A stretch of DNA of 63,884 bases, counting the filler, from Hyphochytrium catenoides (taxonomy: Eukaryota > Protista > Hyphochytriomycota), in the NCBI GenBank assembly GCA_900088475.1. It is 9 parts of 9 records of this genome, joined end to end, with 100 filler letters (N's around TTAATTAATTAA, not from the genome) between each part and the next. Parts side by side here need not be neighbours in the genome. Positions count along the whole stretch, not along the records: positions 50,679 to 55,434 come from FLMG01001586.1; 8 more parts are not named here. One strand, given 5' to 3'. This document shows positions 49,891 to 57,531 of the stretch, piece after piece. The first letter of the stretch is position 1, and the number at the start of each line of letters is the position of its first letter. The notes under the pieces were generated by a model. That model was given only the letters and a program-made list of their open reading frames with translations. It had not been told where the DNA came from and did no database searches. The position numbers and the translations under genes are program-made.

Positions 49891-50699
49891 GTGGGGGAAC
49901 AAAGCCCAACAAAGACAGGAGAAAGTGGCGAAGACCAAGGAGAGAGCCACAGAGACAGTGCCAGAAGGAGCCGAACGAGGGAGAGGGAGAAAGTAAGAGA
50001 GACACAGCCGAGACAGGAAGAGAGAGAGAAAGAAGGTGCGTGGAGGAAGGAGAAGAAGGGGGAAGACACTTTGTAGAGACAGAAGCTGAGGTGAGAAGGG
50101 TATATACGTCGGTGCTGCTGCTTCTGCGCAGCATGGAGGAAGGAACTCAGAAGCAGAACGGAAGGAAGAGAGAGGCAGCTCCCTCCGTATCATGTCTTCT
50201 CTTTCACCATCTGTCTCTGTTGTCTCTCTCTTCTTCTTCGCTTCCCTCTCTCTCCTTCTTCCTCCTCGCCCCCGTCTCTCATCTGCCCTTGCCTATGAAT
50301 GAAGGAGAAGAGACGCGACTGGTTCTCTTCTCTCTCTCTCTCTCTCTCTCTCTGTCCTTTCGTATGTTTCTGGCTCTCTCCGTCACCTCCCCAAATAGCA
50401 GGAGGGCCCTGATAACCAAGAAGCAGAGTGACGGACGGACACACACACACACACGCAAGGATAGAGAAAGGGGATAACTAACAGCCGCCTTTCTTAGACA
50501 CTTAGACTTGGGCCGTTACAGAATCAACGAAAGATTTTATCAGGCTTGATTAGAGTCTGATAACTGGTTTAACCCCCCNNNNNNNNNNNNNNNNNNNNNN
50601 NNNNNNNNNNNNNNNNNNNNNNTTAATTAATTAANNNNNNNNNNNNNNNNNNNNNNNNNNNNNNNNNNNNNNNNNNNNGTGAAAGTTGCAAGACAAGTA

Positions 50700-50945
50700 G
50701 AATAAGTAGTTGTACAGAACAGATACTTGGAGTTGAGGATCCACCAAGTCCGTTTCACTTACCGAGCTATCAGGTTCGGTTTCCCTCCACAGAGCGAGTG
50801 GTAGACCTCGAAGGTCCACTGCTCTGGATATTTGCGCTGCCTACTAAACGGCGGCGGCGGTGAAGAGGGGGAGGTTGGGCTTGTGCTGTGATCAAATTTA
50901 AAAGCTGAATATTAGAGACTTCATCGCCGCCACCATTATTGACTC
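50700..50945 (-). ncRNA. Candidate Fanzor omega-RNA scaffold
   Basis: Four stems directly 3' of the Fanzor stop codon: 50934-50919 pairing with 50865-50850 (16 positions, one mismatch, one G-U), 50826-50790, 50780-50761 and 50754-50718. The location matches where TnpB/Fanzor omega-RNAs are encoded. The ends are not defined. Confidence 0.6.
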
Positions 50946-50946
50946 T

Positions 50947-53900
50947 CTACTTTGGCAAAGCAATGTCCTCACCTTCATCTTGTTGTAGGGCATCCGTCGC
51001 TTCTGCCCTTCCCCTTCTTCTTCCCGTCTCTACCGGCGGCCTTGCTGTTCCCATTGAGGAACCTGCTGGCCGCCTCCGCCGCCGCCTTTTGAAGGCAGGG
51101 GGCCGCTGTGGTGAACGGGCAATGAAAAGAATATTCTTTGCCGCATTCACATCACGTGACAGCAGATGTCTGCCGGAGGCCTTGCACGCGGTGGACCGAC
51201 ACCGGCGAAGTCCTCGGACTGACTGCCAAGCAGTGACCATCGTCTATGAGCAAATGTGGGAAGGACGGCAGAGGTTAGAATAGTGTCTGTGCATTTTATC
51301 GTTTACACTGCTCACCTCCCCTTCGACGCCTCTGTCAATCCTTGGCTGGATTCCTCCTCTCTGCTGTCGCATCGTGCCCGCGACCCCTTGAGACCTCATC
51401 CTCNNNNNNNNNNNNNNNNNNNNNNNNNNNNNNNNNNNNNNNNNNNNNNNNNATCGAAGCACAGAGAAGCCAAGAACCTATCCACTGTGCGCCGCTTGTT
51501 GATGTAAACATCGAACTTTGCTCTGGCCACACGGCGCTTCCGGACGTGAGACGTTATCGCTTCCCACTTCACGCGAACGACCCGGAGATAATCCACAAAC
51601 TCCTGAAGGGTAGCGGCTGCATGGTTGAACAGCATGAGGATTTGGGTATAGAATCTTATTGTAGAAGCCAAACGTCCACACCAAGATGACAAAGAGACAA
51701 GACAAAATGGAGATCTCAAGGTGGTACTAGGGGCCTTTCAAACTTAGATAGATCAGAGGTTCCACATGTTTTTGTTGATGATAAAGATTAGCGACGAGTA
51801 CAAGATGAATGGGGGAATAATCAAGTGAAGAAGAGGTACCAAAGCTTAAAGATAAAGAAGAAAAGCTAGCTGAAGATGCTCCACCTTTGGCCCTGCGCTG
51901 AGAGAGCGCTTGGATGGCCGAAAGATATTCCTCCGAAGAGGCATCCCATTCAGCCATCTTCTCCCTGCTCAAATTGCGGTGACTTTCCTGCAGGTATTGT
52001 CCTCGGGACAAATTGTACACATGCCCCTCGTCATCAATTCCACAGAACATGTTTGTCCTCCCCGGATCGACACCAATTACCCGAGGATGTTCAACTGGAT
52101 AGCGGAGGAGAAAAGGGGAAAGTTTAGGATCATTTAGAAAGTAAAAAGGACCGTCATCAAGTTGCCCCGATGACAAACGACTTACCAGGGGATAGATGTT
52201 TATGCGGGGTCCGCTGTCCCCATTGGCGCTGTCCTCTCGCAGTCGCTGGAGTTGTGGCTCTACGGCCTGTCACAACGTAGTGGAAGCTACCTGTGACGCC
52301 ATCCGTCTCAAGGAGTTCTTGAGGTGGAATTTCAAAGAAGAGGAGAAGAAGTCAACCGGTGGCTGAGGTCAAGGATCACCTCCTCAGGTTTCGATAAATA
52401 ATAGAATAAGATGTTACCTCCAAAAACCCTCGGACCGACCTCACCCAGCCGATCTTGCTTCAGATCAAAAACTATCTTCCACATGTAGTGGCCATCTGCA
52501 ATATTTCCACCATGGTTGCAATAGGCTCTCACTGCATCTTCCCAGTTCCTGTTGAAACCAGCAGGATCGGCTCTACTGCAGGATTGTATAATTCCGCTGG
52601 GTTTAAGGCAGGCGGGAAAGGCGAAGGGAGAAGGGCGGCGAGCAGGAGAGAGAACACAGCAAATGCCGCGCAAAAGTTAGCTAGGTAGGTTAATGACTGA
52701 GCAGACATTCCAACTGGCTGTCGAAAGGGAACTACCGCGATCAAAGAGGTAACCACCTGTTCCGTACCTCAGGACTCTACTGTCCACAAACACGTTATGC
52801 CTCCCAAAGGAGGGCAGAGGCGCTATGGAGAAGCGCTTCGCGAGACTCCGACCATTGGCTGTTCTAGTCGGAGTACGCAAGTTGCCCTCTTCATTTCCTC
52901 CACCCCGCTGCCGGCGATTCCGCTCCCTCCTATTTGCTCTCTTCCTGTATCGCCGCCTCCGCCTCCTAACAACATAATAAATGCAAACGTTAGTGTACCA
53001 GAGGGCATCAACTACTTGGTATGGAAAGACAAAGACAGAAGACGGTGTACAAAGAAGAATGCCAGCGATCTCAATCAAGAGGGAATGGTTAACCCACCTT
53101 TCTCTCAGTTCTTGCGCGGTGCGTTGAGGATGANNNNNNNNNNNNNNNNNNNNNNNNNNNNNNNNNNNNNNNNNNNNNNNNNNNNNNNNNNNNNNCCTTT
53201 CCCTTTTCCTGCGTCTTCCCCTTTGATCGCGAGGTCGACGTTCTCTGGGTCGAGGAGGAAGAAGGTGGCCTTGCGGACCTCCCTGCTGCTGCACCAACCC
53301 GTCTAGATACTGGGAGATTACAACTTGATATCTCCATAGCACATGTACAAAGTGATTGGGATGCTTCCTGATTAATTTCTTTGTAATCGGCTCCACCTGT
53401 GAAGTACACTAAACGTGGGGTCTCAGCATAGAGGTGGACATAAAGCATACTTGAGGAAGCGCTATTGAAGATGGTAACAGCAGACGAGTCTTCAATCCCT
53501 TGGTCCAAGCTGATTTTCAAGAAGGAGCACACATGAAAGGCGAAGCTAGACGAGAACAAGGCTTTCAGGATCAGAGACAGAAAAAAACAGAGTTGACGGA
53601 AGAGAAATGAAGATAGAGATAAGTGCCTCATCAAAGAGATCTTACCCTCTCCCTATCATTCGTGTAAGCACAGAGTCTGGCCCTCTCCTGTCTGATGTAC
53701 ACTTGCACATCATCTGGGAAGACATCTAGAGGTTGAGTATCCTCCTCCTCTACGCCCTCGTCCTCGTTCTGCCAAGTTGCCGCAGCAGAGGAGTTGGTAG
53801 GACAGAACAACAGTCAGTTTCATCTACCAGCCCCAAATCTACTGTTGAGTAGATACCTCCTCCGCGTCAGCGTCTTCTGCCACTTTGTCGGGCCAGTTAT

Positions 53901-55226
53901 TCATTTGCTTTCTGATCGCCAGAAGTGTCCGCTTACTCAGTCCATGATGCCGAAGGGACACGCGCAGGTAGTCCAGCTGACGCTGGAAAAAAGGCTCCTA
54001 GTGGTTCGTGGTCGTAATACGTAGATCAAAAGCATTAGAAACCTTTCGAACATAAACTGTTTCACCAAGTTTGACAGAGAAGGGGGATCATCAACAGCCA
54101 AGATCCCACATCAATAGTGGGCCACCCATTATAGGCAAAGCACAGGAGGATGCCATTTCTTATTATGAGACTGAGTGCCAAAGTCGATGAAGAATGAAAT
54201 CGTAGGGTCATCCTCCACGTTCAGCTAAAAATAAAGGTAGGGGTACCAACGTCACAATGAACAGTAATAGCAGACATACCGCTAGATGGTTCATGAAGTT
54301 GGTTTGGAGCTGTAACCCAACTTGGGTGATAGAGTTGGCGTCCCCAAGCCTTCTTTCAAATTTCTGGAGAAGGCGGTGGGAAAACCCCCCGCGGCCCGCA
54401 CGAAGGGCATTCTTAAGGAGGTTTGCAGGAATGGGCGGGCAATATTAGACTATTATATGAGAGTAGCTGAAAGACACGGTAAATGGTAGAGACTGAGCGA
54501 TGCTGCAAATCAGTACTTTCCGGTAAAACGCTAAAGACAAGAGTACACTTACCACGAATGTTGTGAGCTCCGCACTGAGCTCCATTCGCCTACGCCTACC
54601 CCTCCCAGCCGGATCTTCAGCCTCCTCACCGCAAATAAGGACCAGATGTATGAAAGTGTTGGCCTTCGAAAGATTGGCCAGCGGGTTCCCATTTTGGAGG
54701 GCCCAGAGCAAATAGAGGTTTAACGCTTCCCCCCCTGCTCTATAGGCGTTGGAGACCGCGGTAACGCGAGCCTCCAGCTCGTTTTTGAAGCCCGTCCGCA
54801 GGACATTCCGATCAGGCTCCGGCAGAGCCCAAACTGTTTTGCCTGGNNNNNNNNNNNNNNNNNNNNNNNNNNNNNNNNNNNNNNNNNNNNNNNNTAGCTT
54901 GTCCCTCTGTTCTTCCATACTTTTGTCATATAATCTCTCCTCCACGGTTATTACATACCAGACAGATCGCCATCTAATCCAGCTGTAGTGGCTGGCTGTC
55001 GCGCATTGAGTGTGTCGATGTGTTCTTGAAATCGCTGTCGACTTCCTGACCGTCTATGTTGTCTCCTCTGCGATGCCTCCTCCACTCCACGCGCGTCTAA
55101 AATCAATGGATGATAAGATACGGTTTCTTGGCACATCCACTACGATACTATCAAGAACTAGTAACACCGAAAGCAGCAGAGAAGCGATAGAAAGAGCACG
55201 ATGACATCACCAGCTGAGGACGTCAT
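50947..55226 (-). CDS. Fanzor: Fanzor1-type RNA-guided endonuclease (eukaryotic TnpB descendant), intron-rich, with three internal N gaps
   Basis: Spliced exons 55226-55211, 55096-54959, (gap)54846-54553, 54363-54280, 53997-53857, 53768-53646, 53396-(gap)-53098, 52965-52768, 52596-52418, 52317-52186, 52094-51885, 51616-(gap)-51316, 51243-50947. Motifs in Fanzor1 order: VTAVSNAY..GGEALNLYLL, GDANSI...TNFMNHL-EPFFQRQ, RFSIAP.....NVFVD, W..VFDL, FGELLETDG, RuvC-I VIGVDPGR, bridge-helix-like KFDVYINKRRTVDRF, VRGLRRCRSTAC (Zn ligands), RuvC-III SRDVNAAKNI. Confidence 0.9.
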
Positions 55227-57531
55227 AGCAATGATTCTTCAATCATGCGTGAGTGAGGCCCCATAGCATCATTGATTCTTCTGCCCCAGCTCTTCGCTGA
55301 TCGGGAGCCAAACTTTGATTTGTTACTTGTCTTTTTCGGGAAAATTGTAAAATGATCTGTATGGTGCCCAGGGTTCTCCCTCCGGTTCTTGGGTTCGTGT
55401 CCAATCTGTCGCTCCCGAGACTCTTAAATCCCGCNNNNNNNNNNNNNNNNNNNNNNNNNNNNNNNNNNNNNNNNNNNNTTAATTAATTAANNNNNNNNNN
55501 NNNNNNNNNNNNNNNNNNNNNNNNNNNNNNNNNNTCCACTGAAGGACTCCCAAACTAGCGGCACAAACTGCAGCCCCAATAGCTGGCATGGATTGCTGCA
55601 TCGGAAAGGGTTCTAGATTGCATTGAATCCGTAACGGACACATCAAAGGTCGTGTACTTGTACCGATAAGAAATAAAGGAAGCTGTGAAATAACAAAGCT
55701 TCTGGCTTCTGATCAGAGCCCAGAAGAAGGTGGCGAGGTTCACGGAAGACTTGAGCCCAGAGTCCCGAAAAACTGGAAGAGAACGTCTTGTACGCGGCGG
55801 TGACGCTGAAGGCATTTATGGAACCCAAACAAGGCTGGCACGAAACAGGAGTGCAAAGCAGAGGGAAACCTAACAACCATCACAACGTTAAACCAAAGGA
55901 GAAGAAGTAAGCTTCAATTGCAGCCAGGGTCTAGAACCAGTCCGAAGAAAAGCCCCTGCGTCGTACGAGAGAGAAGTAGCGCGTAAGCGAGCCTCGGAAC
56001 GCAAGTCCAGGGTCAACAGAAGACAAAAGGACCTGGGCAGCCGTCGCCGTCCAAATAAACAATCGAGACGGCAGGTGGTACCGTTGCAGCAGCTGATGCA
56101 ACTCTTCTAACGACAAGACGAGGTAAGGGCAGGCTCTCAATCCGTCCGCTTCGTGAACATCATTGGCATGCCGGAAGGCGTCGAGCAACTGGTCGGCCAA
56201 CTTAGGAGAGTATGGCTCGACATCCGGCAAACGCGAGTTGACGCCATCAACATGGCCGAGGAACCAACAACAGAATAAGATACGCAAGAATCGTGAGGGA
56301 GGAGGCAGACGCTAGACCAAGGCCACCCACCAGGTCCGAAAGGGTTAGGAAGTGGCTTGCCGCCAACCCAGGTCCAAGACGGAAGCAGATCCAAGAGTCG
56401 AGCGAGAAATCCGCGTACTCCGAGGTCAAACTGAGAGCAAAGAGAGGCCACCTGAGAGGGAGGACAGCCGCGTAACTGGATCTTGGCAAAGCCTAGACAC
56501 TCGCGAAAGAGACAAATTTGTGTCTGAGAGGAGACAAAAGGAGCATTGCATCAAGTTCACTTAGATGAGAGAGGACAGAAGAAGCAAAAGAAGCGACGAA
56601 GAAGGCAGAATTAATGGGTGCGTCTTATGTAAGAGTTCCACACCCTTCACCACTGGTTGAGAAATTGCCGCAGAGAAAGATGGAAGTCACTCAAGGTTCA
56701 TACGGGGGTTCCAAAGCTCGCACATGTCCAGGATGAGCCTAAGCCCATTCTGTGGGCTGCGGTCTTCTTGAAGGAGGGCAACCAGGGGCCGTCGGTAGCG
56801 ACAACCTCTCCAGTGCCATCATTAAGGTACCACACGTGGAGGTCAAGAAAGGTACGGACGCAGCAATGTCGGTGGCAATAGGATGAGAGAGCTAACGCGA
56901 GAGCACCGGACAGAAGGGTCATCTTTCTGGACTCCGTAAAAAGCAGCGACGAGGAGAGCAGAGCCATAGAAAAATGGGATGGGGTGGATTAACAAAAAGA
57001 GGCCCGAGGAAGAAGAGTAGGAGAGAGTGATCACGGGCGCCATCCAAAATAGCAAAGAGCTGATCGGTGGACAGTTGAAAGGAATCTTGCACTCAACCTT
57101 CAGCAAGGGCTGATCCTTGTCGTCACTCAAGTCATCAACGACAGGCAGTAGAAATTCACCTTCTCCACCAACAGGGAACGCTGTGCCCCGCCTGAAGCGC
57201 GGTGAGAAGAGAGACAGAGCCTGGGACTTCACTATGTCACAGGAGCACTTGGACACTAATCGACAAAGAATTTNNNNNNNNNNNNNNNNNNNNNNNNNNN
57301 NNNNNNNNNNNNNNNNNTTAATTAATTAANNNNNNNNNNNNNNNNNNNNNNNNNNNNNNNNNNNNNNNNNNNNTTCACCATCATATCTCCTTCTCCTGAC
57401 CATTGTCGGGTTAATCTCTTTGAGTTTGCTTCTTCTTCAGCTCTTCATACACTGATGGTGAAGATGCTGCTAACTCACCTTGGCAGTCCTTCTGATACAT
57501 TCTCTTTTTGTCGCCCTTGATACCCTTTCCA

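Follow-up and report, generated by a model that had tools for sequence, protein, structure and literature searches.

Fanzor1 proteins are eukaryotic RNA-guided DNA cutters descended from bacterial TnpB. To our knowledge, Fanzors are the sole eukaryotic RNA-guided DNA endonucleases known, and they are of interest as compact genome editors. Here we describe a gene of the hyphochytrid Hyphochytrium catenoides that we assign to this family. It was found in a stretch of DNA of 63,884 nt, hereafter the window, made of nine parts of genome assembly GCA_900088475.1 joined end to end, and it occupies the minus strand of the piece at positions 50679-55434 (FLMG01001586.1).

Fanzor1 genes are established in protists, fungi, plants and giant viruses (PMC10432273). 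The catalytic site of Fanzors is rearranged: a Gly or Pro is found at the position of the canonical RuvC-II Glu, which TnpB1 retains, and an alternative Glu is located some 35-45 residues downstream (PMC10530073). In SpuFz1, the corresponding catalytic residues coordinate two magnesium ions (PMC10432273). Intron capture reaching ~9.6 introns per kb, the acquisition of nuclear localization signals (NLSs) and the presence of multiple copies have been described for Fanzors, with many intron-bearing cases (PMC10530073).

The closest described systems are SpuFz1 of Spizellomyces (8GKH), PpFz1 of Parasitella (9CF0) and GtFz1 of Guillardia (9CER). The family of the Hyphochytrium gene shares with them an N-terminal WED/REC region, a split RuvC domain and a zinc-ribbon tail in the same order, as well as a Gly in place of the canonical RuvC-II Glu and an alternative Glu in a D/N-E-x-x-T-S/T motif, and the family profile and a predicted fold match them over nearly their full length. 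These resemblances are found at the profile level only: direct searches with the exon pieces retrieve no characterised Fanzor1, and the gene is therefore neither one of those nor a close paralogue. It also differs from them by a long Arg-rich insert before the WED strand, found as well in its relatives P0007 and P0008, and the zinc ribbon of this copy seems to lack its first Cys pair. As for the intron-containing Fanzors surveyed by Jiang et al. 2023, including the Fanzor1c copies of Chlamydomonas reinhardtii (PMC10530073), they resemble our gene in having spliceosomal introns, several genomic copies and NLS-like runs, and they have the rearranged catalytic site that is found in its family. 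The intron density of the Hyphochytrium gene, ~4.4 per coding kb (from at least 11 introns over ~2.5 kb, counting a putative one in an assembly gap), falls within the published range. With this locus, a strongly diverged lineage is added to Fanzor1; it has at least 11 introns and is tied to intronless relatives on giant-virus contigs. The locus, probably overlooked by automatic annotation, also provides a worked gene model. Existing knowledge of the family is unchanged, as intron-bearing multi-copy genes were already described (PMC10432273, PMC10530073).

Gene structure

All long open reading frame (ORF) fragments with TnpB-like motifs are on the minus strand of the piece. They were joined by hand, and every boundary was checked by script. 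The resulting gene has 12 visible exons, from 54918 to 50947, and 10 visible introns. Three assembly gaps interrupt it, whose true lengths were obtained by placing on the piece the contigs of X1, X2 and X3, three DNA runs from the same organism. The features are as follows, in the direction of the gene.

Exon A, 54553-54918, minus strand: translation proposed to begin at the ATG at 54918; WED/REC part of the N-terminus; includes gap 3 (54847-54894).
Exon B, 54280-54411, minus strand: REC-like helix, ending QTNFMNHLA; family motif GD-x-...-YQTNF-x-N matched; donor GTATGT, phase 0.
Exon C, 53857-53997, minus strand: starts EPFFQRQLDYL.
Exon D, 53646-53768, minus strand: acidic stretch, then DDVQVYIRQERARL; profile positions ~190-207; resembles EDVQDLINNERREL of P0008.
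Exon E, 53098-53396, minus strand: helical part, then Arg-rich insert; contains gap 2 (53134-53195).
Exon F, 52768-52965, minus strand: an Arg-rich stretch precedes KRFSIAPLPSFGRHNVFVDSRVL (WED strand); phase 2 at both the acceptor TTAG and the donor GTACGG.
Exon G, 52418-52575, minus strand: ends MWKIVFDLKQ...RVFG; aligns to the profile motif W-x-x-v-F-x-l.
Exon H, 52186-52317, minus strand: LLETDGVTGSFHY...HLSP; its TDGV motif is nearly invariant in the family.
Exon I, 51885-52094, minus strand: RuvC-I GVDPGR (52074-52057), catalytic Asp codon at 52068-52066.
Exon J, 51453-51616, minus strand: ATLQEFVDYL...KRRTVDRFLASLCFD; helical RuvC insert; runs into gap 1.
Gap 1, 51404-51452, minus strand: between exons J and K; its 49 N stand for 208 nt according to a bridging X2 contig.
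Exon K, 51316-51403, minus strand: loop in the zinc-ribbon region, with GVEGE as its last residues before the donor GTGAGC, in the sole frame open to the donor.
Exon L, 50947-51243, minus strand: RGLRRC-RSTAC; RuvC-III SRDVNAAKNI; basic run FKRRRRRRP; stop TAG.
3' flank, 50679-50946, minus strand: expected site of the omega RNA scaffold and of the transposon right end, by analogy with SpuFz1 (PMC10432273).

The 10 visible introns all have GT-AG borders, measure 72-282 nt and preserve the frame, with phases 0, 0, 0, 0, 2, 2, 1, 1 and 1 from A|B to I|J and phase 0 for K|L. Exons A-J amount to 641 codons and exons K and L to 127, and the ~770 visible codons contain neither internal stops nor frameshifts, as the earlier note on this DNA had reported, before a TAG stop codon at 50949-50947. 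The GC content is 55.1% in exons versus 44.0% in introns. When translation in the exon frame is continued into the introns (A|B to I|J), a stop is met in eight of the nine, E|F being the one that stays open.

The splice junctions quoted in the earlier note are all present in the sequence and all in phase: NHLA|EPFFQRQ joins exons B and C (phase 0), RVFG|E|LLETDG joins exons G and H (phase 1) and LSP|V|EHPRVIGVDPGR joins exons H and I (phase 1). It had argued that splicing itself creates expected motifs, and three of these indeed occur at the exact spacing of intronless homologues. The junctions at which the spacing of the homologues is exactly reproduced are B|C, with N-x-L-x-x-P/T-F...F-L, G|H, with F-x5-T-D-G, and I|J, with the S...L-x-x-F-x-x-Y-L segment. 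Across B|C, 15 residues separate the N from F/Y-L, as in P0003, P0008 and P0009. The estimate of about 13 exons came close, given 12 visible exons and at least one hidden junction in gap 1, but the start proposed at 55226 and the exons upstream of 54918 could not be retained: the segment 55226-54950 is not supported by homology, and no in-frame junction with it is possible. Joining the upstream frame-1 piece, which ends at a GTATGT donor near 54960, would imply an intron of 39 nt, after which a stop is met at the gap edge.

Two other splice sites were considered and rejected. The acceptor TTTTTTCCAG|CGT for exon C would delete five residues present in all homologues. As for the donor TTTG|GTACCT of exon I, it was set aside since the shorter form of the exon aligns gaplessly with the profile.

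Homologues and family profile

With exon I as the query, a full HMMER search retrieved seven proteins from among 1.84 billion cluster representatives, including P0003 (578 aa) and P0007 (541 aa). The closest, P0001, is 57% identical to exon I, and no representative has a higher identity. This is consistent with the earlier suggestion that the gene is unannotated, which is probably correct, the evidence being indirect. P0008 (813 aa) and P0009 (652 aa) were obtained in a further search; follow-up searches with P0007 and with an alignment of these proteins (A1) returned only three proteins, presumably because Arg-rich words swamped the candidate list. When the retrieved proteins were compared with the piece by tblastn, they matched the proposed exons in collinear order, and residues 245-431 of P0008 covered exon E. 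A pattern scan with A1 then yielded 65 metagenomic and seven viral loci (L001-L072) with uninterrupted ORFs of 570-700 residues. Alignment A3 was built of 30 non-redundant ORFs and four proteins (34 sequences) and contains no sequence from the window.

Against the A1 profile, the score of the spliced model is 200.5 bits; with that of A3 it rises to 255.4 bits (E 5.5e-80), with one A3 alignment running through exons A-J and a second one for exon L. The first begins at residue 63 of the model, in exon A, and places exons A-H on profile positions 41-330. On their own, exon I scores 54.6 bits against A1, exon J 42 bits and exon L 40-45 bits, and the spacing between exons I and J is collinear with the profile and gapless. 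Homology support of its own was not found for exon K. A MAFFT alignment with the exon pieces as separate rows (A2) misplaced short, weakly conserved exons and was not used as evidence for those.

In the tree, the gene groups with P0007 and P0008 (support 98/92). These three have in common an Arg-rich, low-complexity insert, at 52965-53396 in exons E and F of our gene, which separates the REC helices from the WED strand; P0003, P0009 and the viral ORFs are without it. This segment, which may be an NLS or bind nucleic acids, has a predicted local distance difference test score (pLDDT) below 50 in the P0008 model described below.

The intronless relatives (L001-L072), found on metagenomic and giant-virus contigs (e.g. 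L067, on a GVMAG contig of 242 kb), show 25-33% identity, score 150-514 bits against the A1 profile and have the invariant D, G, E and R-D motifs. They differ from the Hyphochytrium gene in being single ORFs devoid of the Arg-rich insert, whereas the latter is interrupted by at least 11 introns and has a long branch in the tree. Family members on giant-virus-like contigs of aquatic metagenomes comprise L066-L072 as well as L009, L012 and L019 (62-344 kb, one of them named GVMAG). Several metagenomic relatives have their ORF split into two overlapping or adjacent ORFs, as in L036 (2254-3366 and 3339-4088), L038 (28-711 and 684-1433), L032, L035 and L055. These are apparent frameshifts, which suggests that decayed copies exist there too.

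Relationship to Fanzor1 structures

Searched against the PDB, the A1 profile has a single match, SpuFz1 (E 2.3e-10). The A3 profile matches PpFz1 (1.5e-27), SpuFz1 (9.3e-25) and GtFz1 (2.4e-16), the match to SpuFz1 spanning profile positions 8-579. The link between our gene and these structures runs via the family profile and not directly from the gene product. We also built an AlphaFold model of P0008, the closest full-length relative, with A3 (pLDDT 75, predicted template modelling score 0.73). In a Foldseek search of the PDB with this model, seven Fanzor1 entries come first (E 1e-15 to 1e-13), and SpuFz, PpFz and GtFz are aligned over 810-940 columns with target TM scores of 0.51-0.67.

TnpB of ISDra2, Cas12f and Fanzor2 also have the RuvC core and the TNB zinc ribbon. 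Unlike Fanzor1, they give only marginal matches, over ~300 columns in the Foldseek search (Cas12f 3e-4, Fanzor2 1.2e-2, TnpB 1.7e-2), and they are without the long N-terminal region. With the A3 profile, ISDra2 TnpB has an E value of 0.13, and TnpB and Cas12 proteins are all above 0.1, which is not significant.

The profile and structure comparison with Fanzor1, TnpB and Cas12 that had been proposed as a check points to Fanzor1, the predicted fold being that of P0008, and the identification made from the DNA in the earlier note holds: only Fanzor1 structures are matched by the family profile in the PDB. Altogether, the sequence of the gene and the predicted fold of its relative support its membership in the Fanzor1 family, as a diverged member.

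Catalytic residues, zinc ribbon and proposed activity

In the family, the RuvC-I Asp, the Gly of an A-Y-G motif at the RuvC-II Glu site of TnpB and the R-D motif are each found in 34/34 sequences, and the alternative Glu of D/N-E-x-x-T-S/T in 33/34. The Gly and the alternative Glu make the family a match for the rearranged Fanzor site (PMC10530073). The copy in the window has both the RuvC-I Asp, in exon I, and the RuvC-III Asp, in exon L, where SRDVNAAKNI is encoded at 51159-51130 and the Asp codon is at 51153-51151; two of the three catalytic residues are therefore shown for this copy. The positions of the RuvC-II-site Gly and of the alternative Glu both fall inside gap 1, and the contig ends give H-E-E-T-T-S there.

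As for the zinc ribbon, its second Cys pair, in the CRSTAC motif (51201-51184), is present in exon L, as is the RDVNAAKNI motif that the earlier note had also reported at the C-terminus. The match of this exon to PF07282 (Cas12f1-like TNB) is weak (E 0.023); the domain is detected in 28 of the 34 family members. Among these relatives, the first pair has the form C-x-x-C in 21-25 of 34 and, counted by position, C or H in 29/34 and C in 25/34; 5-9 of the 34, e.g. P0009, are without one of its ligands. An NLS-like basic run, FKRRRRRRP, follows the nuclease core at 51093-51067.

The protein would consist of an N-terminal WED/REC region, a split RuvC domain, with its Asp in GVDPGR, Glu in x-E-x-x-T-S and Asp in R-D-x-N-A-A, and a C-terminal zinc ribbon (TNB), together with basic NLS-like runs. 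By analogy with SpuFz1 and GtFz1 (PMC10432273), it would associate with an omega RNA produced from the 3' end of the element to which the gene belongs. Double-stranded DNA paired with the guide next to a short transposon-adjacent motif would then be cut, and cutting would favour the persistence of the host transposon.

Assembly gaps

Legible letters are available for 26-30 nt at each gap edge. Gap 2 is 62 nt long in reality, as contigs of X1, X2 and X3 span it at equal length; with one more nucleotide this makes 21 codons, which is compatible with the frame. In gap 3, 48 N stand for 114 nt according to an X2 contig, i.e. 38 codons, again compatible with the frame, and the contig-end letters are open in the frame of the exon (f0) on both sides. 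The earlier note had asked whether stops or frameshifts hide in the gaps: gaps 2 and 3 have lengths that agree with the frame, and gap 1 needs an intron or else is a frameshift.

Exon J terminates in phase 0 and one further base is required for exon K, so that 209 nt have to be accounted for in gap 1. This number is not divisible by three, and J and K can therefore not form a single uninterrupted exon. Some 70 positions of the A3 profile are missing at this place. The letters at the gap edges read PGGTGERLRR after SLCFD on the side of exon J and HEETTSFLV(G/R) just before exon K, in the frame of the latter. About 40 residues are expected between the end of exon J and the Glu motif, which leaves ~65-74 nt. 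This remainder is close to the neighbouring 72-nt intron and is of the required length class (2 mod 3), so that a hidden intron is a more economical reading than a frameshift. Gap 1 should then contain the AYG segment at the former RuvC-II position, the alternative catalytic Glu and that intron.

Copies of the gene

The gene is multi-copy. The three DNA runs yield contigs at 99+%, 95-99% and 90-95% identity, over exons and introns alike, with structural variants. As the introns are common to the copies, the element multiplies as DNA. The search for other copies suggested by the earlier note was thus positive, with several found in DNA reads at 90-100% identity, and its view of a long-resident gene fits badly with these near-identical and diverged copies, which look like those of a mobile multi-copy element.

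In other copies, a 40-nt A-rich stretch replaces 109 nt of the 5' flank (55201-55311; X2 and X3); further variants are a skip of 117 nt (52481 to 52599) and a joint with a switch of strand (52784/52965). The copies therefore vary in structure. Some contigs of X1, X2 and X3 diverge at position 53878, in exon C, where the letters before it on the plus strand are unrelated sequence followed by three TTAGGG units. These contigs seem to represent a copy that was truncated or rearranged, beside a short telomere-like repeat. At position 50836, the whole contig depth of X1 and X2 has a T where the window has a G, with which the X3 contigs agree.

Preferred interpretation and alternatives

We lean towards the view that the locus is one copy of a multi-copy, intron-bearing Fanzor1 gene of at least 12 exons, whose product would have ~840 residues and which is probably still coding. 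A number of observations weigh against this interpretation. RNA runs were looked for and none is listed. Gap 1 is not readable as a single exon, its intron being deduced from frame and length. The contig ends read F-L-V-G/R-R-M at the first Cys pair of the zinc ribbon, i.e. V and M at the ligand positions. The terminal branch of the gene is 2.29 long versus a median of 0.52, with a best identity of 32%, and the structural evidence concerns P0008 rather than the gene's own product. An Rfam scan of the 3' flank gave no match, the fold z-score of the 3' 322 nt is only -1.59, and no omega RNA structure was found in the 4.8-kb piece. Neither terminal inverted repeats nor a transposase or a second gene are present within its 4756 nt. 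Finally, a paralogue ~90% identical (X1-X3) has lost 3 nt in frame in its exon B, where the C run at 54356 also contains a +1 insertion and the reading frame is thereby shifted. This paralogue is likely to be a pseudogene copy, the alternative being a homopolymer error common to the three runs.

Several of these points raise the possibility that the locus is a decaying, non-functional pseudogene copy of the same Fanzor1 element, in which case the identity is right but no active nuclease is made. This we regard as plausible, if somewhat doubtful. The 209 nt of gap 1 fit a frameshift as well as a hidden intron, the first Cys pair is apparently missing, the branch is very long, no RNA run is listed, and the frameshifted paralogue indicates that copies of the family do decay in this genome. 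However, the visible codons are free of stops and frameshifts, every visible splice site is intact, and both catalytic Asp residues are conserved, with the Glu motif visible in the contig ends. Furthermore, the ~40 residues expected in gap 1 leave a remainder of typical intron size and of the right length class, and some relatives, such as P0009, are also without the first Cys pair. The earlier suggestion that the gene is possibly still functional is weaker than the identification itself, in view of the three assembly gaps, of which gap 1 is not readable as a single exon, of the apparently absent first Cys pair, of the branch length and of the absence of RNA runs from the listings.

Beyond the preferred interpretation of a copy that is probably still coding, it is tempting to speculate that the gene belongs to an active, proliferating Fanzor1 element, whose nuclease works with a zinc ribbon devoid of its first Cys pair and is equipped with a subfamily-specific Arg-rich insert, in a lineage whose nearest relatives include intronless giant-virus genes. 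We consider this unlikely. If true, it would provide a natural variant for probing the contribution of the zinc ribbon and the movement of Fanzor1 between viruses and intron-rich hosts.

That the gene was derived from a Fanzor1 and domesticated as a single-function host gene, long resident, intron-rich and detached from the mobile element and its omega RNA, is quite improbable. The many introns, the absence of terminal repeats and of a transposase from the piece and the failure to detect a structured 3' RNA would be in keeping with such a history. Nevertheless, the several copies, near-identical or 90-95% identical with their introns included, and their structural variants form the pattern of a repeated element, and the catalytic residues are kept. 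As for a chance chain of ORFs or a contaminating bacterial TnpB or Fanzor2 gene, searches of Pfam and the PDB with single exons gave no significant match (an IscB RuvC-I motif, E 0.44, and PF07282 were the only hits, the exons being too short), but this explanation is already refuted by the ten exons collinear with the family profile (255 bits in total), by spliceosomal introns, which rule out a bacterial origin, and by a preference of profile and fold for Fanzor1 over TnpB and Fanzor2 that exceeds ten orders of magnitude.

Matches in metagenomes

Two metagenomes contain matches to the locus, each with a few percent of the sampled words. A 213-nt contig of a rhizosphere metagenome (X4) aligns with five differences within intron I|J (51632-51844), and ~5% of the sampled words of 51453-53133 are in common with a soil metagenome (X5). 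Either the same or a close organism is present in soil, or a separate repeated element lies inside intron I|J.

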